Below the pieces are notes generated by a model, which ran no database searches, had not been told where the DNA came from, and was given only the letters and a program-made list of their open reading frames with translations. The position numbers were made by a program, and so were the translations under genes. Shown one piece after another: positions 53,974-64,000 of a stretch of DNA of 64,000 bases (the stretch's first letter is position 1; each line of letters starts with the position of its first letter). The DNA is from Pseudomonas aeruginosa PAO1 (GTDB lineage Bacteria > Pseudomonadota > Gammaproteobacteria > Pseudomonadales > Pseudomonadaceae): assembly GCF_000006765.1 (NCBI RefSeq), contig NC_002516.2. One strand, written 5' to 3'.

Positions 53974-55428
53974 ATGCTGCATCAATTGACCCTCGCCGAG
54001 ATCGCCCGCGCCCTCGCCGACAAGCAATTTTCCGCCGAAGAGCTGACCCGCACCCTGCTCGGTCGCATCCGGCAGCTGGATCCCCAGCTCAACAGTTTCA
54101 TCAGCATCACCGACGACCTGGCCATCGCCCAGGCCAAGGCAGCCGACGAACGGCGCGCCAACGGCGAGAACGGCGCCCTGCTCGGCGCGCCGATCGCCCA
54201 CAAGGACCTGTTCTGCACCCAGGGCGTACGCACCAGCTGCGGTTCGAAGATGCTCGACAACTTCGTCTCGCCCTACGACGCCACCGTGGTCGAGAAGCTC
54301 ACCGCCGCCGGCGCCGTTACCCTCGGCAAGCTGAACATGGATGAATTCGCCATGGGCTCGTCGAACCAGTCCAGCCACTACGGCGCGGTGAAGAACCCCT
54401 GGAGCCTCGACCGCGTGCCGGGCGGCTCCTCCGGCGGTTCCGCCGCGGCAGTCGCCGCGCGCCTGCTGCCGGCCGCCACCGGCACCGATACCGGCGGCTC
54501 GATCCGCCAACCGGCGGCGCTGACCAACCTCACCGGGATCAAGCCAACCTACGGCCGGGTTTCCCGCTGGGGCATGATCGCCTACGCTTCCAGCCTCGAC
54601 CAGGGCGGCCCGCTGGCGCGCACCGCCGAGGACTGCGCGCTGATGCTGGGGGTGATGGCCGGATTCGATCCGAAGGACTCGACCAGCGTCGAACAGCCGG
54701 TGGACGACTACCTGGCCGCCCTGCAGAAGCCGCTGAGCGGCCTGCGCATCGGCCTGCCGCGGGAATACTTCGGCGCCGGCCTCGACAGCCGCATCGCCGA
54801 CGCGGTGCTGGCCGTGGTCGAGGAGCTGAAGACGCTCGGCGCCACGGTGAAGGACATTTCCCTGCCGAACATGCAGCACGCCATCCCGGCCTACTACGTA
54901 ATCGCGCCGGCCGAGGCGTCCTCCAACCTGTCGCGCTTCGACGGCGTGCGCTATGGCTATCGTTGCGACGCCCCGCAGAACCTGGAAGACCTGTACAAGC
55001 GCTCGCGCGCGGAAGGCTTCGGCAGCGAAGTGAAGAACCGCATCATGGTCGGCACCTACGCACTCTCGGCCGGCTACTACGATGCCTATTACCTGCAGGC
55101 TCAGAAGATTCGCCGGCTGATCAAGAACGACTTCGTCAGCGCCTTTGCCGAAGTGGACGTGATCCTCGGCCCGACCACGCCGAACCCGGCCTGGAAGATC
55201 GGCGAGAAGAACGACGACCCGGTTTCCCAGTACCTGGAAGACATCTACACCATCACCGCCAACCTCGCCGGCCTGCCGGGGCTGTCCATGCCCGCCGGCT
55301 TCGTCGACGGCCTGCCGGTGGGTGTCCAGTTGCTCGCGCCCTACTTCCAGGAAGGCCGCCTGCTCAACGTCGCGCACCAGTACCAGCAGGTCAGCGACTG
55401 GCACACCCGCACCCCGGCCGGCTTCTAA
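53974..55428 (+). CDS. gatA: Asp/Glu-tRNA amidotransferase subunit A
   Basis: [22 protein letters not shown] amidase signature. Confidence 0.97.
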
Positions 55429-55443
55429 GCCATGGCAACGCCA

Positions 55444-55506
55444 CGCAGTCCCCTCCCCTCTCCCGGCGCGGAGAGGGCGACCCGCAGGGTCGGCAGCGGG
55501 ACTGCG
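55444..55506. repeat. Three-stem palindromic element in the gatA-gatB spacer
   Basis: Outer stem CGCAGTCCC/GGGACTGCG, inner stems CCCTCTCC/GGAGAGGG and CGACCC/GGGTCG, all perfect. Confidence 0.65.
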
Positions 55507-55534
55507 CAGGCACAGAAGGATTGAGGAACACCAC

Positions 55535-56980
55535 ATGCAATGGGAAACCGTGATCGGGCTGGAAATCCACGCACAGCTCGCCACCCAATCGAAGATCTTC
55601 TCCGGCAGCTCGACCGCCTTCGGCGCCGCGCCGAATACCCAAGCCAGCCTGGTCGACCTGGCCATGCCGGGCACCCTGCCGGTGCTCAACGAGGAGGCCG
55701 TACGCATGGCCTGCCTGTTCGGCCTGGCGATCGACGCACGGATCGACCGGCAGAACGTGTTCGCCCGCAAGAACTACTTCTACCCCGACCTGCCGAAGGG
55801 CTACCAGACCAGCCAGATGGACCATCCTATCGTCGGCAAGGGCCATCTCGACATCACCCTGGAAGACGGCACCACCAAGCGCATCGGCATCACCCGCGCG
55901 CACCTGGAGGAGGACGCCGGCAAGAGCCTGCACGAAGACTTCCAGGGCATGAGCGGCATCGACCTGAACCGCGCCGGCACGCCGTTGCTGGAGATCGTTT
56001 CCGAGCCGGACATCCGCAGCGCCAAGGAAGCCGTGGCCTACGTCAAGGCGATCCACGCCCTGGTGCGCTACCTGGGCATCTGCGACGGCAACATGGCCGA
56101 GGGCTCGCTGCGCTGCGACTGCAACGTCTCGGTACGACCGAAGGGCCAGGCCGAATTCGGCACCCGCGCCGAGATCAAGAACGTCAACTCCTTCCGCTTC
56201 ATCGAGAAGGCGATCAACCACGAGATCCAGCGCCAGATCGAGCTGATCGAGGACGGCGGCAAGGTAGTCCAGGAAACCCGCCTGTACGACCCGAACAAGG
56301 ACGAGACCCGCTCCATGCGCGGCAAGGAAGAAGCCAACGACTACCGTTACTTCCCCTGTCCCGACCTGCTGCCGGTGGTCATCGAGCCCGAGTACCTGGC
56401 GAAGCTGCGCGAGCAACTGCCGGAACTGCCGGTGCAGAAGCGCGAACGCTTCGAGAGCCAGTACGGCCTGTCCGCCTACGATGCCAGCGTGCTGTCCGCC
56501 AGCCGCGAGATGGCCGACTACTTCGAGAAGGTCCAGGGCATCTGCGGCGACGCCAAGCTGGCGGCCAACTGGGTGATGGTCGAGCTGGGCAGCCTGCTCA
56601 ACAAGGACGGCCTGGAGATCGAGCAGTCCCCGGTGTCCGCCGAGCAACTGGGCGGCATGATCCTGCGCATCAAGGACAACACCATCTCCGGCAAGCTCGC
56701 CAAGATGGTCTTCGAAGCCATGGCCAACGGCGAGGGTTCCGCCGACCAGATCATCGAGGCCAAGGGCCTGAAGCAGGTCACCGACAGTGGCGCCATCGAG
56801 AAGATGCTCGACGAGGTGCTGGCGGCCAACGCCGAGCAGGTCGAGCAGTACCGCGCTGCCGACGAGGCCAAGCGCGGCAAGATGTTCGGCTTCTTCGTCG
56901 GCCAGGCGATGAAGGCCTCGAAAGGCAAGGCCAACCCGCAGCAGGTGAACGAGTTGCTGAAGAAAAAGCTCGAAGCGTGA
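55535..56980 (+). CDS. gatB: Asp/Glu-tRNA amidotransferase subunit B; start at MQWETV
   Basis: [39 protein letters not shown]; RBS GAGG. Confidence 0.97.
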
Positions 56981-56989
56981 GTCAAAGCC

Positions 56990-57017
56990 AGACGCCGGGT
57001 TCGCCCGGCGTCTTCTT
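56990..57017 (+). terminator. Intrinsic terminator after gatB
   Basis: AGACGCCGGG-ttcg-CCCGGCGTCT followed by TCTT; UUCG tetraloop. Confidence 0.7.
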
Positions 57018-57039
57018 GTCCGCCAGGAGCCTGTTGTCC

Positions 57040-57417
57040 ATGCCCACCCCATCCGCCGCCGCGCGCCTCGCCCTCGCCGTCCTGCCCCTGTTCCTCGCCG
57101 GCTGCTCCAGCCTCGCCGGCAGCGGTTCCGCGGATACCGGCGAAGCCTCCTACTATGGCAGCCGCCACGCAGGCCTGCGTACCGCCAGCGGCGAGCGCTA
57201 CAACCCCAACGCAATGACCGCTGCCCACCGCACGTTGCCGTTCGGTGCCCGCGTGCGGGTAACCAACCTCGACAACCGCCGCAGCGTGGTGGTGCGGATC
57301 AACGATCGCGGGCCGTTCCGCCGCGGACGGATCATCGATGTATCGCGCAAGGCCGCCGAAGGCCTGGGTATGATCCGCAGCGGCGTGGCGCCGGTTCGGA
57401 TAGAGTCGCTGGATTGA
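57040..57417 (+). CDS. Small RlpA-family (DPBB) lipoprotein / lytic transglycosylase-like protein (PA4485-like)
   Basis: Lipobox LAGC, ASYYG, TAAHRTLPFG, RINDRGPF, RIIDVS; RBS AGGAG. Confidence 0.88.
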   Translation: MPTPSAAARLALAVLPLFLAGCSSLAGSGSADTGEASYYGSRHAGLRTASGERYNPNAMTAAHRTLPFGARVRVTNLDNRRSVVVRINDRGPFRRGRIIDVSRKAAEGLGMIRSGVAPVRIESLD

Positions 57418-57959: not shown

Positions 57960-58751
57960 CTACGGATAACTGAAGCGCTTCACCAGCGTCAGCTCGCCAG
58001 GCTTGCGCATCGGCACCAGGAAGGTTTCCTGTTTCTCGTTCGGCGTGCCCTCTTCGGTGACCAGGGTGATGCGCGCCGTGGTCAGGTCCTGGGCGGCCTG
58101 TTCGGCGCCATCCTCGCTGCTGCCGTAGCCGCCGCCGAAGTAGTTGACGTAGACCAGGTAGGGCCCCTTCTGCGGCGTCGGCGTGGCGATGATTTCCGGG
58201 CCGTAGCCGGTGGTGACGTCGACATCCAGGGTCGCGCCGTTGGCCAGCGAACGATTGCCATACCAGACATGGTCGCCGTCCGGGGTCACCAGGTGCAGGT
58301 CGAGGTCGGTGTTGTCGCTGTCCCAGGACAGCAGCACGCGCAGCTTGGCCGGCACTTCCCCGCCGCCGCCACCGTGATAGAACTGGACCCGTCGCGACTG
58401 CCCGGCGGCGTTGCGCACCTCGACGCTGTTGCTGCCGGACGGGAAGGCGAACGGGCGGTCGAAGCTGCCATCGGCGTCCACCTTCAGTGGCATGCTCACA
58501 CCGTTCACCACCAGCGTCGCCGGGCGGTCCTTGGGTTGGCTCTCGATCGCGCCGCGAATGCGCGCGGTGGTCGCCTGGTCGGCGGCGACGTTGACCGAGG
58601 ACGCCGGGTAGTTCACCACCTGCCGGTAATTGGCGGCGGAACCGTCGCCGGCACGCCAGCCGGAGACCGGCGTATCCAGTTTCACGGGGTTGTCCGCCCA
58701 GGCGACGAGGGGAAGGCAACTGAGCAGGGCGGCAAGGGACATTCGGTTCAT
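57960..58751 (-). CDS. magF: MagF, YfaP/DUF2135-family exported protein; start at MNRMS
   Basis: Signal peptide, LRVLLSWDSDNTDLDLHLVTPDG, DVDVTTGYGPE. Confidence 0.85.
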   Translation of the reverse strand: MNRMSLAALLSCLPLVAWADNPVKLDTPVSGWRAGDGSAANYRQVVNYPASSVNVAADQATTARIRGAIESQPKDRPATLVVNGVSMPLKVDADGSFDRPFAFPSGSNSVEVRNAAGQSRRVQFYHGGGGGEVPAKLRVLLSWDSDNTDLDLHLVTPDGDHVWYGNRSLANGATLDVDVTTGYGPEIIATPTPQKGPYLVYVNYFGGGYGSSEDGAEQAAQDLTTARITLVTEEGTPNEKQETFLVPMRKPGELTLVKRFSYP

Positions 58752-58755
58752 GGAG

Positions 58756-60405
58756 TCATTCCAGTAGCAGGCGCCGGGCCAGGCTTTCGATATAGTTTTC
58801 GTCCTGGCCGCTGGGATGGGCGCGGAAGGCCAGGTGCAGGTATTCGTGGGTGAGGTCCAGGCGTTCCTGTAGGGAATACAGGCCGCGGACGAAGATGCGT
58901 TCGCGCTCGCGATCGACATAGGGCCGCCCGGAAGCCAGGCGGCACACGGAAAAACTCGGAATCTCCTCGTAGCCGGGCTCTCGGTCGAGGCGCTCGCGCC
59001 ACTGCCGGCGCTGCTTGCGCAGCCAGTCTTCGGCAGCCGGCAACGGCTGGCAGGCGGCCACCGGGTTGTCCCAGCGGCTCAGGCTGCTGCGCGGGAAAGC
59101 CTGGGCGAGGATGCTGTCGTAGCCCAGTCCCTGCCCGGCTTGCTCCACCGCGTGCTTCCAGGACAGGCGCGCCGGACCAGGCTGGTCGGAGTGATAGTTG
59201 ACGGTCGCCCCGGCCAGCACCAGGTCGGCGCTCCAGGCAGCGATCCGCCGCGTCGGCGCGCTGGCCGGGCGCGGCGCTACGCGCTGGCGCTGGCTGCTGT
59301 CATCGATGGCCAGGCATTCGCCGCGCGGCGCGGCGTTTTGCAATAGATAGGTGCGAATGGTCACCGCCAGCGCGCGAGCGGCTTCCTTCGGCTGCGCCGA
59401 GGCTTCGCGCTCCAGCACCCGCGCCACGTACTCTTCGCGCGAAACCCGCGCGACCAGGCGCGGCACGCCATCCACCCGTTGCAGGAAGAGGTCGCCGGCG
59501 CTGGCGATGTCCAGTCGATTGCCGTTGGCGAAGAGCACTTGCTGCGGACCATGCAGCAGGCCTTCGGCGGCCGGGTGGCCGGAGGGATCGCTGACCGAGC
59601 GCAGCGGATAGCGGCTGAACAGGTTCACTTCCACGCAACGGCCCGGATCGGCCGGCCACGGACTCGGCAGGAAGCGCCCGAGCACCTCGGCGTAGCGGTC
59701 CAGGATCATCTTGCTGGTTCCCGGGCCGCCGAGCCAGAGCGGCGTTCCATCGACCAGCCAGCCAGCGAAACCGCCCTGGCGCGCCTGCGGGTCATGGTCG
59801 TCGAGCCAGCTCCAGGTCTTCACCCGCAGGCGGCCGCCAAGGCTGGCCACGGCATGGCCGTCGCCGGCCTGCAACGCCACATCGAGCAGTACCCGCCGCG
59901 CCTCGCCCTGGGCCGGCAGTTGCTGCAACTGCTCCAGAAGCTCCTTAACCGGCACCCGCGTCTGCGGTTGCAGCCGTTCCAGATCGAGCAACCAGGCCGG
60001 TGCCTGGCGCGCCTGCCAGTAGCCGCGCCAGGCCTCCGGCCGCAAGGCGAGGCGCTGCGGCTCGAAATACAGCCCGCAGGAGCGCACCAGGGCGCGGTCA
60101 CGACCGATCGTCTGGCCATTCTCGCAGCAGTAGACCTCCTCGCGGCTGCGCCCCTGGCAGGTATAGGGCGGCTCGGCCTGGCCGGTGTCGCTCAGCCAGG
60201 CGAAGACGAACAGTTTCCACAGGCTGCCCAGCGGAGCCTGCAAATCGGCCGGCAACGGCCGGCGCTCGAGTACCCGCTGGCGATCCAGGCTCACCAGTTC
60301 GTAGCCCTGGGTCGTGCGCCAGGCCAGCTGGACCGGCGCCTCCGCTGCGCGAAGCAGCAACGGCACGGCGCACAGCAGGACCAGCCAGGCGCGCAACGCA
60401 ATCAC
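58756..60405 (-). CDS. magE: MagE, YfaQ-family exported protein (DUF2300 plus SpoIID-like domain)
   Basis: Signal peptide, EEYVARVLEREA...ALAVTIRTY SpoIID motif, 4-nt overlap with magD. Confidence 0.85.
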   Translation of the reverse strand: MIALRAWLVLLCAVPLLLRAAEAPVQLAWRTTQGYELVSLDRQRVLERRPLPADLQAPLGSLWKLFVFAWLSDTGQAEPPYTCQGRSREEVYCCENGQTIGRDRALVRSCGLYFEPQRLALRPEAWRGYWQARQAPAWLLDLERLQPQTRVPVKELLEQLQQLPAQGEARRVLLDVALQAGDGHAVASLGGRLRVKTWSWLDDHDPQARQGGFAGWLVDGTPLWLGGPGTSKMILDRYAEVLGRFLPSPWPADPGRCVEVNLFSRYPLRSVSDPSGHPAAEGLLHGPQQVLFANGNRLDIASAGDLFLQRVDGVPRLVARVSREEYVARVLEREASAQPKEAARALAVTIRTYLLQNAAPRGECLAIDDSSQRQRVAPRPASAPTRRIAAWSADLVLAGATVNYHSDQPGPARLSWKHAVEQAGQGLGYDSILAQAFPRSSLSRWDNPVAACQPLPAAEDWLRKQRRQWRERLDREPGYEEIPSFSVCRLASGRPYVDRERERIFVRGLYSLQERLDLTHEYLHLAFRAHPSGQDENYIESLARRLLLE

Positions 60406-63400
60406 TCGACCTTGACCTTGGCCAGCGCCGGCTTGGCTTCCAGGGCCTGCTGTTCCGGCGCGTAGAGACGCAGGTAGCGGGCCGGTGGCAGGTTGAAGCT
60501 GCCTTTCTGGGAGAAACGCACCAGGTGACGGAAACGCTGCTCGCCACTCAGGCTGTCCACCGGCACCCCGTAGAACAACTCGCCCGGTTCGTTGCGCGCG
60601 CGCTCCAGGGTGGTCGCTTCGTCGCCGGCCAGGCCGCTGATCTTGATGCCCCAGGTGGTGCGCTCGACATCCGCGCCGGGCGGCAGCGGCAATTCCAGCA
60701 TGCCGTAGCGTAGAGCGGTGTCTTCCGGAACGTTCAGGGTCACTTCGTCGAGATACAGTTCGTCGCTGGAAAGCGGCTTGTCGCCAACCTCCTCGACCTT
60801 GAACTCGAACGCCCCCTCACCGGGCACCAGGCGCAGCAGACGACGGCTGATCTGCACCGGCAGTTGCCCGCTCGGCGCCTGGGCGCTGCGGTAGCTGAGC
60901 GCAACCGGCAACGGCCGGGCCGGCGCCTCGTCCAGGTCGACCCAGCTCGGAATGCCGCGGCCGCGCCATTGCCAGTAGGTTTCGCCGCTGGCGCCGCGCT
61001 GCGCCTGCCAGTCCTTCGGCGGCTGCGGCAGCTTGCCCTGCGGCGCCTGGGCCAGGGCGCCCTGCAGCCAGGTCAGGGCCAGGGCGCGTTCCAGGGTCGA
61101 TTGCGCCGGCGCCAGGCGTTGCAGCAGAGCGCTGGCCTGCTGGCCATCCACGGCCGAGCGAGAGGCCAGCAAGGCATCGGTGAACGGCAAGCCGGCCTCA
61201 CGCAGGCGCTGCGTCGCCGTCTCGGCCTGGGCGGCCAGCGGCGCGGGCACCGCGACCCGCAGTTGCCGTGCAAGGTCCACCGCCAGCACTCGCGCCGCGG
61301 CCAGGCCGACGGCCGAGTCCGGGTCGCCCAGCACCAGGCCGTCGTCGGCCTCCAGCGGCTCCGCGCGCGCCTGCCCTTCGCCGGCGTTGGCCAGATCGTT
61401 GAGCAGGCCGCCGAGCAGGGTGTTCACCGGCAATTGCATGTCGCGGGCGAAAGCCAGGATCAGCGCACGCTGCAGCAGCGGGGTCTGCGTCGCCTGCTTG
61501 GCGTAGGGCTCGAGGATGCGCTGCCAGTGTTCGGCCGGCAGTTGGATCTCCAGTGCGCGGCTGGCGTACCAGTCGGCGTAGTAGGCGTAGGCGGTGAGGA
61601 AAGCGTCGCCATCGACGTCGCCACCCCACCAGGCGAACCAGGCGTCCGGGCCGGCCATCTGCACCAGGCGCAGGCGACTGTTCTGCATGATCAGGCGCAG
61701 GCGGTCGCGAATCCGCGGCTCGCCGCCGGCCAGCGCCGGATAGGCGATGCTCAGCGGCAGCAGTTGGCTGGCGGTCTGCTCGACGCCGCCGTAGGGATAC
61801 TCCAGCAGATCATCGAGATTGCCCAGGTAGGCAGCGGCCGGGCCATCGGCCAGGCGCAGGCGTACGTCGCGCGCGTCCGCCGGCAGTTGCAGCGGGTTGC
61901 TCGCCGCCGCCAGGCTGAGGTTCTGCATCTGCTCCACCTGCCAGCCGTCGGCCAGCAGGTTGAAGCGCACCGCCAGGCGGTCGCGGACCTGCCCGTCCTG
62001 GCGCAACTCGGCGCTCCAGTCGCCATCGCTGAGCGGCTGTTGCGCCAGCGGAATGTAGTTGACTCCCTTGGCCAGCTCCAGGGTCTGGCTGCGCTGGCTG
62101 CCAGGCGGCCCGCTGAGCAGCTCGGCCTTGACCGGCTGTTCGCCCTGGTTGAAGACGAACAGGCCGAGGTCGGGCTGGTCACCCTGGCGGAAGCGAGTCG
62201 GCCCGCTCCACTTCAGGTACAGCGGCTTCTCCGAGCGAAGGAACTGCTTCTTCTGGCCGACCTGGCCGTTGTCGTCGATGGCCCGCGCGGTGATCCGCCA
62301 GCGGGTCAGCGAGTCGGGCATGCGGAAGCTGAAGCTGGCCTTGCCCTGGGCGTCGGTGACCAGCTCCGGCTGCCAGGCGGCGGTGTCGACGTCCTCGCGG
62401 CGCGGCCGCTCCAGTACCTTGACGCCGCGCTCGCTGCGGTTCGCCCGTCCGGGTGCGCTGGTGCTGCCGGGCAACGCCACGTCGTAGCTGATGAAGGCCA
62501 GGCTGGCGCTGGTGCGCACGTTGTTGCGCCGCGGATGGTAGAAGAACTGGTCGATGCCGGGGGCGATCTCCGCCTGCAGGGCATAGACCATCTCATCCAC
62601 CACGCTGACGGTCAGGTGGCTGGAAACCGGTTTGCCGGCGAAGCGCGTGGCCAGGGTCACGGTCACCGTCTCGCCCGGTTCGTAGCGCTCCTTGTCGGTG
62701 GCGATGTCGATCTCTACCTGGGGCATGCCGACCTTGATCCCGGCGTTCTGGAAGCTGTAGTCGCCGCCCTTGGTGTAGAGCACCGAGAAGGTCAGGTTCG
62801 GCGAGAACTCCTCGCGCACCGGGATCCACACGCGGTACTGGGTCGGATTGAGCTTTTCCAGGCGCAGCCAGTCGGCGCCCTTGGACAGCAGGGCGGTGGC
62901 CTCGACCTTGTCGCGCTCCAGGGACAACAGCGCATCCTCCACCGGCTCGGGGAAGGTGATCAGTGCGGAGGCTTCCTCGCCGGTGCGGTACTCGGGCTTG
63001 TCGAACACCACCTCGACGGTGCCCGGCACCGACTTCACGCCCTCGCCGCTCACCGAGTGGCCGGTAGCGCCAAGGAGCTGGCCCTTGTCGTCGCGCAGCT
63101 CCACGGAATAGGTACCGGGGCGCTCGAAGGTCAGCGCGAAGCGGCCGTCGGCGACCGGACCGCTGTCGGTGGCGCGGTCCTCCAGGCGGATCCACTGGTA
63201 GCTGCTCGGCTTGAGCGGGGTCGGCTGTTCGCTGGCATAGCTGAACTCGACCTTCTCGCCGGCGGCGCTGAAGCGCTGCGGCGCGCTCAGGCGGTAGCGC
63301 GCGGCGCCGCGCTCGATGAGGATCTCCTTGCTGGTCTTGACCCGGTAGGCGGCGCCGTCGCTGGCGAAGATGGTCAGCATGTAGCGACTGGGTTTCTCGG

Positions 63401-64000
63401 CCGGCGGCAATTCGATGGCGGCGCGACCCTTGCCGTCGGTGGTCAGTTCGGTGCTGCTCAGTTCCACCGGGAACTGGCCGAGATACTGCAGTTCGTTGTC
63501 CACCATCGACAACTGCTGGGCGCGCAGGCTCAGTTGCAGGCGCGCGTTGGCCACCGGCTTGCCGTCCGGATAGAGCAGGACGATCTCGCCCTTCACCGGC
63601 TCGGCGGTCTTGAAGTCCGGCTTGGCCAGGTCGAGGGCGACTTCGAAGTGCGGCTTGATGTATTCGGCGACGCGGAAGGCGCTGCTGTAGGTCTGCCCGC
63701 GGTAGTCGAAGCGCAACTCGTAGCCGCCGGCGACGGCGTTCTCCGGCAGTTGGAAGCGGCCATTGGCGCCGCTCTTCGCGTCGAAGCGGAGGTCCAGGCT
63801 TTGCAATACCGTGCCGCTGGCGTCGATCACGCTCAGGCGCACCGGCGCGCTGGCGGCGGCCTGGGATTGCCGGGCGTCCTTGAACTCGCGGCCGACCATC
63901 TTCAACGAGACCCAGTCGCCCGGCCGGTACAGCGGGCGGTCGGTGAAGGCGTAGATCTTGGTGTCGTAGATCTCGCTGTCGTAATAGAAGTTCTCGGAGA
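60402..64000 (-). CDS. magD: MagD, bacterial alpha-2-macroglobulin of the YfaS type; 5' end lies outside the window
   Basis: Frame stays open to the window edge (FTDRPLYRPGD MG2 motif), SFRMPDSLTRWRITA, YPYGGVEQT thioester-position motif. Confidence 0.93.
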   Translation of the reverse strand, partial: SENFYYDSEIYDTKIYAFTDRPLYRPGDWVSLKMVGREFKDARQSQAAASAPVRLSVIDASGTVLQSLDLRFDAKSGANGRFQLPENAVAGGYELRFDYRGQTYSSAFRVAEYIKPHFEVALDLAKPDFKTAEPVKGEIVLLYPDGKPVANARLQLSLRAQQLSMVDNELQYLGQFPVELSSTELTTDGKGRAAIELPPAEKPSRYMLTIFASDGAAYRVKTSKEILIERGAARYRLSAPQRFSAAGEKVEFSYASEQPTPLKPSSYQWIRLEDRATDSGPVADGRFALTFERPGTYSVELRDDKGQLLGATGHSVSGEGVKSVPGTVEVVFDKPEYRTGEEASALITFPEPVEDALLSLERDKVEATALLSKGADWLRLEKLNPTQYRVWIPVREEFSPNLTFSVLYTKGGDYSFQNAGIKVGMPQVEIDIATDKERYEPGETVTVTLATRFAGKPVSSHLTVSVVDEMVYALQAEIAPGIDQFFYHPRRNNVRTSASLAFISYDVALPGSTSAPGRANRSERGVKVLERPRREDVDTAAWQPELVTDAQGKASFSFRMPDSLTRWRITARAIDDNGQVGQKKQFLRSEKPLYLKWSGPTRFRQGDQPDLGLFVFNQGEQPVKAELLSGPPGSQRSQTLELAKGVNYIPLAQQPLSDGDWSAELRQDGQVRDRLAVRFNLLADGWQVEQMQNLSLAAASNPLQLPADARDVRLRLADGPAAAYLGNLDDLLEYPYGGVEQTASQLLPLSIAYPALAGGEPRIRDRLRLIMQNSRLRLVQMAGPDAWFAWWGGDVDGDAFLTAYAYYADWYASRALEIQLPAEHWQRILEPYAKQATQTPLLQRALILAFARDMQLPVNTLLGGLLNDLANAGEGQARAEPLEADDGLVLGDPDSAVGLAAARVLAVDLARQLRVAVPAPLAAQAETATQRLREAGLPFTDALLASRSAVDGQQASALLQRLAPAQSTLERALALTWLQGALAQAPQGKLPQPPKDWQAQRGASGETYWQWRGRGIPSWVDLDEAPARPLPVALSYRSAQAPSGQLPVQISRRLLRLVPGEGAFEFKVEEVGDKPLSSDELYLDEVTLNVPEDTALRYGMLELPLPPGADVERTTWGIKISGLAGDEATTLERARNEPGELFYGVPVDSLSGEQRFRHLVRFSQKGSFNLPPARYLRLYAPEQQALEAKPALAKVKVE

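Follow-up and report, generated by a model that had tools for sequence, protein, structure and literature searches.

Previous studies indicate that type I bacterial macroglobulins are encoded with the penicillin-binding protein (PBP) PBP1c, an arrangement behind the published trap-plus-repair idea, whereas type II macroglobulins belong to an operon of six genes without PBP1c. Type II operons occur widely among Gram-negative bacteria, and little has been established about what their accessory genes do. Here we describe one such gene, magE of the Pseudomonas aeruginosa mag operon, which lies at 58756-60405 on the minus strand of the window, the whole stretch of 64,000 nucleotides of P. aeruginosa PAO1 DNA (assembly GCF_000006765.1, contig NC_002516.2) that was analysed; all positions below are those of the window. 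An initial annotation of this stretch, made from the DNA letters, had read MagE as a three-domain cell-wall enzyme, and its premise concerning PBP1c in type I and type II systems agrees with the literature.

In the case of P. aeruginosa, deletion of magE is known to result in less MagD, the macroglobulin of the system, and in MagD forms of higher mass, and the authors of the Mag papers proposed a chaperone or signal-peptide-processing role for MagE. The 100 kDa form of MagD depends on MagB and MagC, and MagE is not required for it. In a 2025 screen the mag operon, tested via magD, protected against VgrG3 and Tae1, two type VI secretion system (T6SS) effectors that target peptidoglycan. In the case of E. 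coli, a 2025 study using HHpred and AlphaFold2 assigned residues 1-245 of YfaQ to class B PBPs (99.86%, template modelling (TM) score 0.71) and residues 246-549 to SpoIID (99.86%, TM 0.46). That study described a Sec signal peptide and a predicted periplasmic location for YfaQ, wider cells after deletion of yfaQ, a deletion phenotype profile resembling those of mepK, mepS and nlpI deletions, and phenotype links to these and other envelope genes; the paper makes no mention of HExxH, zinc or the macroglobulin operon. YfaQ resembles MagE in its family (DUF2300, PF10062; COG5445), its length of 549 residues, its type of operon, and its combination of a transpeptidase-like N-terminal half with a SpoIID-like C-terminal half. 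The PBP-like plus SpoIID-like reading is already published for YfaQ as a bipartite description; what the present analysis adds, with respect to the searched literature, is the zincin-like module, the finding that the catalytic residues are invariant, the clamp of cysteines and the explicit link between YfaQ and the Mag operon.

The open reading frame at 58756-60405 is P. aeruginosa magE, the known gene PA4488. Its product is 99% identical, across 100% of its length, to the P. aeruginosa DUF2300 protein (1380 database entries), and the Pfam DUF2300 model (PF10062) matches it with 295 bits against a cut-off of 25. A search of 1.84 billion cluster representatives gave 279 relatives of MagE at E<=1e-3. 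We aligned MagE with 56 full-length representatives of 50%-identity clusters, which are 28-57% identical to MagE (alignment A1, n=57); counts out of 57 refer to this alignment, and the DUF2300 model matches all 57 sequences. An AlphaFold2 model was calculated with 53 sequences in the model alignment, and reached a mean pLDDT of 91.9 and a pTM of 0.85. For the model alignment, an initial homologue search gave Pseudomonas proteins alone, at identities of at least 64%, and a second, profile-based search supplied relatives of 41-66% identity. In the structure models, MagE is built of three modules, which are PBP-like, SpoIID-like and minimal zincin-like, respectively:

58756..60405, minus strand: magE (PA4488, YfaQ family) coding sequence, starting with GTG and running for 549 codons before the stop, taken from the list of open reading frames.
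59656..60342, minus strand: compact PBP/beta-lactamase-like module, residues ~22-250, assigned by Foldseek and by the order of strands and helices.
59050..59643, minus strand: beta-rich stretch and SpoIID/LytB-like module, residues ~255-452, assigned by Pfam SpoIID, profile and Foldseek.
58759..59043, minus strand: minimal zincin-like module, residues ~455-549, assigned by model layout, Foldseek and profile.

The three-domain reading of the initial annotation came through its checks: a beta-lactamase/transpeptidase fold was found at the N-terminus, a SpoIID-like core with its glutamate aligned in the middle, and a zincin-like layout at the C-terminus. All the motif strings that it quoted lie where it had placed them, although its lower bound of 59341 for the middle motifs overshoots by two codons. 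The six residues singled out there for a conservation check, S61, K64, E334, H520, E521 and H524, are invariant in 57/57. This degree of conservation stands out in a family with a mean column identity of 29% and 24 invariant columns. The invariant positions include S61, K64, C93, S109, C110, K196, T197, Y326, R329, R333, E334, D369, Q374, R375, C452, C488, H520, E521 and H524, and the putative catalytic residues of all three modules sit among the 24 columns. In one sequence alone such motifs prove little (0.41 SxxK and 0.009 HExxH strings are expected by chance for the composition of MagE), and they rise above chance because they are conserved across the relatives.

The N-terminal module carries the following elements:

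60214..60225, minus strand: SLWK, motif 1 (SxxK) with S61 and K64, residues 61-64, at the N-terminus of helix 60-74; invariant in 57/57.
60073-60081, minus strand: SCG, motif 2, S109-C110-G111, residues 109-111; S109 and C110 in 57/57.
59812..59820, minus strand: KTW, motif 3 (KTG position), K196-T197-W198, residues 196-198; K196 and T197 invariant.
60076..60159, minus strand: cysteine cluster C83, C93, C94 and C110, ending in SCG; C83 in 56/57, C93 in 57/57, C94 in 54/57 and C110 in 57/57.

A Foldseek search of the MagE model against the PDB gave 157 matches at E<=1e-3, the best with E 9.2e-6 and a probability of 1.0. The best 50 of these 157 are all of the beta-lactamase fold, namely PBPs or beta-lactamases of class A or D; their TM scores are 0.44-0.57 over whole targets of 230-270 residues. 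The structures closest to the module, which also have a similar size, come from beta-lactamases of classes D and A and from the sensor domain of BlaR1/MecR1; OXA-57, OXA-58, CDD-1 and L2 are examples. Compared with the beta-lactamases, the MagE module shows 9-18% identity and is fused to two other modules, and nothing suggests beta-lactam hydrolysis. The module begins with N-terminal strands; helix 60-74 starts from S61, and the SCG loop comes after helix 102-107. In the model, strand 193-201, which bears K196 and T197, is the first of three consecutive strands that precede the closing helix 231-245. The SLWK of MagE lines up with the SxxK motif of PBP3 from C. difficile (7RD0), and S109 aligns with the serine of its SCN. 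The third residue of motif 2 is G in 44 sequences, S in 7, and A, T and E in 2 each, and is never N. The third residue of motif 3 is F in 29, W in 16, Y in 11 and L in 1, that is, an aromatic residue in 56/57 at the place of the glycine of KTG. The Pfam Transpeptidase model matches 4 of the 57 relatives weakly, with a best E of 1.8e-4. The N-terminal module appears to be a trimmed PBP fold with its catalytic tetrad under strict selection and a reshaped pocket. The initial annotation had suggested a "non-catalytic or altered" transpeptidase site; "altered" seems to fit better, with the asparagine of SxN and the glycine of KTG replaced, and "non-catalytic" is less likely because every catalytic position is invariant and these two residues alone are exchanged.

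The cysteine cluster of this module has a possible counterpart in the zinc-binding class B PBPs, where the middle cysteine of SxN, two Cys/Asp residues and a histidine bind a zinc that stabilises the active site. The family profile over residues 47-119 aligns with the transpeptidase domain of 7RD0, weakly when taken alone (E 0.075), and in this alignment SxxK, C83, C94 and S109-C110 are matched. Of the four ligands that hold zinc in C. difficile PBP3, three align with C83, C94 and C110, and the insertion that carries the histidine is absent from MagE. The invariant C93 may replace the histidine ligand; a Cys4 zinc site and disulfides are both possible from the sequence. MagE has the fold, the SxxK, two upstream cysteines and the middle cysteine of SxN in common with these enzymes (C. 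difficile PBP2, PBP3 and SpoVD; A. baumannii PBP2), but its module spans ~230 residues without the pedestal, anchor and His insertion, carries the extra C93, and has a glycine for the SxN asparagine and an aromatic residue for the KTG glycine. The ~40 residues between the signal peptide and SxxK hold neither the pedestal domain nor the membrane anchor of a class B PBP. A shared clamp would take the Cys/zinc arrangement of class B PBPs into a new setting, a PBP fold that is compact, non-canonical and not of class B. Further cysteines lie beyond the PBP-like module, namely C452 and C488 (both 57/57) and C257 and C364 (both 50/57), within window positions ~58942-59637; these four lie in the SpoIID-like and zincin part of the protein, where they may be joined as disulfides or bind a second metal.

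The middle module contains three conserved elements:

59401..59436, minus strand: helix EEYVARVLEREA, residues 324-335, with the putative catalytic glutamate E334 (59404-59406), which is invariant.
59347-59385, minus strand: EAARALAVTIRTY, residues 341-353, located by string check.
59281..59301, minus strand: D369...Q374-R375 stretch, all three residues invariant; D369 and Q374 align with the D and Q of SpoIID 4RWR.

The Pfam SpoIID model (PF08486) matches residues 317-373 of MagE with 27.8-29.9 bits against a cut-off of 23, and matches 57/57 relatives, with a best E of 1e-9. With the family profile, Bacillus anthracis SpoIID (4RWR) is matched at E 4.4e-4, and residues 418-451 align weakly with the C-terminal helix pair of SpoIID in the profile. 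Counted along the profile alignment, E334 falls on E101 of C. difficile SpoIID (chain 5TXU), a catalytic residue whose replacement abolishes activity and sporulation (PMC6221140). The C-terminal 287 residues were modelled (pLDDT 92.8) and searched separately because the Foldseek listing of the whole model was filled with beta-lactamase-fold matches. The best match of this model is SleC (9H68), deposited as a spore-germination lytic transglycosylase, with E 1.4e-4 over all 287 columns. The catalytic-Glu helix pair, the A-R-T-Y-type helix, the D...Q pair and the C-terminal helix pair all align with SpoIID/LytB (PF08486; 4RWR, 5I1T, 5TXU) and SleC, but the host of MagE is Gram-negative and non-sporulating. 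C. difficile SpoIID also has a Cys/His zinc turn, whose counterpart was not identified in MagE. We conclude that the middle module is a divergent SpoIID-like core that keeps the catalytic glutamate and is no orthodox SpoIID, which adds a Gram-negative relative from outside sporulation to this group.

The C-terminal module shows the elements of a metal site:

58834..58848, minus strand: HEYLH, residues 520-524 (H520, E521, H524), which would putatively bind zinc and supply the catalytic base; invariant in 57/57.
58786-58803, minus strand: DENYIE, residues 535-540, located by string check.
58786..58818, minus strand: candidate third zinc ligands H530 (58816-58818), E536 and E540 (58786-58800), chosen by conservation.

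In the model, helix 456-474 is followed by strands 486-489, 496-498 and 503-506, by helix 512-526 with HEYLH, and by helix 536-548 with E536 and E540. Among the candidates for the third ligand, H530 is kept in 50/57 and E536 in 54/57, and E540 is E in 51 and D in 6 sequences. In the stretch around HExxH, residues 494-536 of the profile align with selecase (E 2.1). Foldseek searches with the C-terminal model gave selecase (probability 0.85-0.93, TMt 0.44, E 0.035-0.1), IrrE/PprI (probability 0.63-0.82) and the abylysin zymogen (0.72). In the viral library, a phage SprT-like protein was found with a probability of 1.0, E 0.043, TMt 0.56 and a root-mean-square deviation of 3.4 over 87 columns; another entry listed there is a PolyVal metallopeptidase domain. 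Pfam Peptidase_M78 matches 2/57 relatives at 0.025, and the SprT-like model matches 1/57 at 0.17. The layout of backing helix, three-stranded sheet, HExxH helix and C-terminal helix resembles that of selecase and abylysin (minigluzincins), IrrE/M78 and SprT-like proteins, and the ~95 residues correspond to the size of selecase; in contrast to these minimal zincins, the MagE module is appended to the C-terminus of a wall-enzyme chain, with no significant membership in a sequence family. We consider a zincin-like metal site in the MagE C-terminus likely, because the weak profile, Foldseek and Pfam signs agree with one another and H520, E521 and H524 are invariant.

The N-terminus of MagE points to export:

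60346..60405, minus strand: predicted Sec signal peptide, residues 1-20, with a hydrophobic helix 2-17 in the model and a published SignalP cleavage after A20.

A hydrophobic N-terminal window is present in 43/57 relatives. The eight conserved cysteines of the family and this signal-peptide-like N-terminus would suit an exported MagE.

From the architecture, the conserved catalytic positions and the operon coupling described below, we lean towards MagE being an active, exported wall-processing enzyme attached to the macroglobulin system. MagE would be exported by Sec to the periplasm, carrying three modules directed at peptidoglycan. The PBP-like module, with Ser61 as nucleophile and with Lys64, Ser109 and Lys196-Thr197, would bind stem peptides or be acylated on them, and the cysteine cluster would clamp the SxN loop in the manner of the zinc site of some class B PBPs. 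The SpoIID-like module, with Glu334 as catalytic acid, would cut glycan strands. SpoIID accepts solely glycan strands that SpoIIP has stripped of peptides (PMC6221140), a restriction that calls for a partner able to cut peptides. The fused zincin (HExxH with H530 or E536) could be this partner, cutting stem peptides or cross-links as SpoIIP does for SpoIID, or it could trim a protein partner; the NlpC/P60-like MagC might serve as the peptide-cutting partner as well. Together, the modules would reshape or mend the wall at the places where the macroglobulin trap is active, standing in for the PBP1c of type I systems. PBP1c beside type I macroglobulins is, like MagE, a PBP-fold wall enzyme encoded next to a periplasmic macroglobulin, but as a class A synthase PBP1c is bifunctional and has a glycosyltransferase domain, whereas MagE has a putative glycan-cleaving module and a non-canonical PBP site.

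A MagE built from three wall-enzyme modules differs from the published view of a cytoplasmic helper of MagD export. The testable picture of a trap (MagD) plus a wall-processing enzyme (MagE) fits three separate observations: the presence of PBP1c in type I but not in type II systems, the protection by mag against peptidoglycan-degrading T6SS effectors, and the resemblance of the yfaQ deletion to deletions of peptidoglycan hydrolases. The reading of MagE remains a prediction, and with it the roles of the type II accessory genes become directly approachable.

Several results weigh against an active wall enzyme. In the PBP-like module, substrate fit would normally require the asparagine of SxN and the glycine of KTG, neither of which is kept, and Pfam Transpeptidase (PF00905) has no match in MagE at E<=10. 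In the middle module, the Foldseek matches to SpoIID are weak (5I1T, E 0.15, probability 0.41; 4RWR, E 0.72, probability 0.28). The full-domain SpoIID_LytB model (TIGR02669) reaches 15.8 bits against a cut-off of 83.3, over model positions 3-54 alone, and the part of SpoIID recognisable in the sequence is limited to its N-terminal core. For the minimal zincin of the initial annotation, the invariant HExxH and the layout in the model stand, and the fold evidence is weak: the zincin fold matches lie at E 0.035-0.2 in the PDB, no peptidase family is reached at a curated threshold, and a Pfam scan of the isolated C-terminus gave no peptidase family at E<=10. The same annotation had inferred that MagE supplies a peptidoglycan arm to the Mag complex; in published work, MagE was detected in cytoplasmic fractions despite its predicted signal peptide, was absent among the MagD partners in immunoprecipitation, and did not give a stable binary complex with MagD. 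Moreover, no measurement of activity, metal content or substrate was found in the searched literature for any member of the family, and neither was an experiment on the formation of a covalent acyl-enzyme.

The substitutions in the PBP-like pocket, with an aromatic residue at the KTG glycine in nearly all relatives, and the low score of the full SpoIID_LytB model are what would be expected if the modules were relics of wall enzymes that merely bind peptidoglycan or muropeptides and, with no catalysis of their own, keep the Mag system in place on the sacculus. Binding modules also seem to be present in the system already, since MagC is reportedly, by the title of the paper on it, an NlpC/P60-like protein that interacts with peptidoglycan. 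However, in none of the three modules does a nucleophile, general-base or metal-ligand position vary, at a mean column identity as low as that given above, and such residues are usually what pseudoenzymes lose. We therefore hold a MagE acting as a scaffold to be unlikely.

The combination of a PBP fold with an HExxH site in one chain also recalls BlaR1 and MecR1, which join a PBP-fold sensor and an HExxH gluzincin. By this comparison, the PBP-like module, which has the size of a class D enzyme, would be occupied or acylated by a wall fragment and would gate the zincin, which would cut not peptidoglycan but a protein, for example MagD or an incoming enzyme. Class D beta-lactamases make up many of the best fold matches, HExxH followed by ExxxE/D (E536, E540) echoes the HExxH...ExxxD of MecR1, and the loss of MagE both lowers MagD and alters the pattern of its forms. 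In BlaR1/MecR1 (M56), however, a membrane-embedded gluzincin precedes an extracellular class-D-like sensor, whereas MagE has no transmembrane helices past the signal peptide, no membrane-embedded protease chamber and the reverse order of modules; the likeness is one of analogy only. Furthermore, the SpoIID-like module would be left without a role, the 100 kDa MagD form needs MagB and MagC rather than MagE, and no stable contact of MagD with MagE was found; a sensor-protease of this kind is rather improbable. By the same analogy, MagE might be a soluble periplasmic counterpart of BlaR1 in which a wall fragment, set free by an attack on peptidoglycan, occupies or acylates the PBP-like pocket and so switches on both the zincin and the glycan-cleaving module, a speculative idea in which we place little confidence. 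If it were true, wall damage would directly trigger macroglobulin processing together with local wall excision or repair, as a damage-gated arm of a bacterial periplasmic immune system.

The role given to MagE in the published Mag papers, that of a cytoplasmic helper in the export or signal-peptide processing of MagD, accounts for its detection in cytoplasmic fractions and for the reduced MagD and higher-mass species of the magE deletion, and processing is a task that a zincin peptidase could in principle fill. Known signal peptidases, however, are serine or aspartic enzymes of the membrane with external active sites. The predicted cleavable Sec signal peptide, the eight conserved cysteines, two modules whose folds act only on the extracytoplasmic wall, and the predicted periplasmic location of the E. 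coli orthologue all speak against this role, which we regard as very unlikely. Lastly, that the motifs are chance strings in an unrelated fold, for which the SxxK expectation of 0.41 and a single-sequence search of PDB sequences with nothing but a spurious ribosome-biogenesis match at E 1 could be cited, is refuted by the invariance of all motif residues, the Foldseek probability of 1.0, the HExxH expectation of 0.009 and the Pfam SpoIID matches above threshold, in MagE and its relatives.

The Pfam annotation of MagE shows a peculiarity. The DUF2300 model, which has 127 positions, matches MagE twice from end to end, at residues 85-207 and 413-531, with ~1e-42 to 1e-48 each. An internal duplication, in which the HExxH and KTW regions would be equivalents in a repeat, was rejected: profile-profile comparison over the 57 relatives gave a probability of 0.1-0.2%, and BLASTP of the two stretches gave E 0.26, out of register and at chance level. 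The model seems to mix two unrelated regions, one overlapping with the PBP-like module and the other with the zincin and the end of the SpoIID-like module, and the double match appears to originate in the Pfam model rather than in MagE.

We found that window positions 57960-64000 on the minus strand form the distal part of the mag operon, in which magE is flanked by two genes:

60402..64000, minus strand: magD, type II alpha-2-macroglobulin, C-terminal 1198 codons, with Pfam MG2, A2M_BRD, A2M and bMG10; the gene runs past the end of the window.
57960..58751, minus strand: magF (DUF2135/YfaP_C), with Pfam DUF2135 at 1e-19; the start at 58751 agrees with the published signal peptide.

In magD, GVEQ (61776-61787, minus strand) occupies the position of the type I thioester CxEQ, and is the signature of type II, thioester-less macroglobulins. 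The GTG start of magE shares bases with the TGA stop of magD in GTGA at 60402-60405, and a gap of 4 nucleotides (58752-58755) separates the magE stop from the ATG of magF. The position of magE directly downstream of a type II macroglobulin gene is found in the window and in three distant genomes. The order DUF2138 (MagB-like), MagC, A2M, DUF2300, YfaP_C is retained in Pseudoduganella, Leeia and Serratia, and this retained order makes MagE a core part of the type II system. The accessory gene that encodes MagE is conserved in operons of type II alpha-2-macroglobulins and coupled in translation.

The two YfaP_C paralogues are arranged differently among these loci. In P. aeruginosa, magA heads the operon and magF stands at its tail, whereas in Pseudoduganella and Leeia (loci L001 and L002; 11683-13243) two YfaP_C genes follow the MagE homologue and none precedes MagB; because of this difference, the order of the two paralogues is not fixed. 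A megablast search against plasmids gave no match to the magE locus, so the locus is taken to be chromosomal. Downstream of the operon, the plus strand at 53974-57417 carries genes resembling gatA and gatB, followed by a small RlpA-like double-psi beta-barrel lipoprotein ending at 57417, as judged from the translated open reading frames alone. RlpA-type proteins in Pseudomonas are wall-binding lytic transglycosylases, and a second wall enzyme, the RlpA-like lipoprotein, may adjoin the mag operon.

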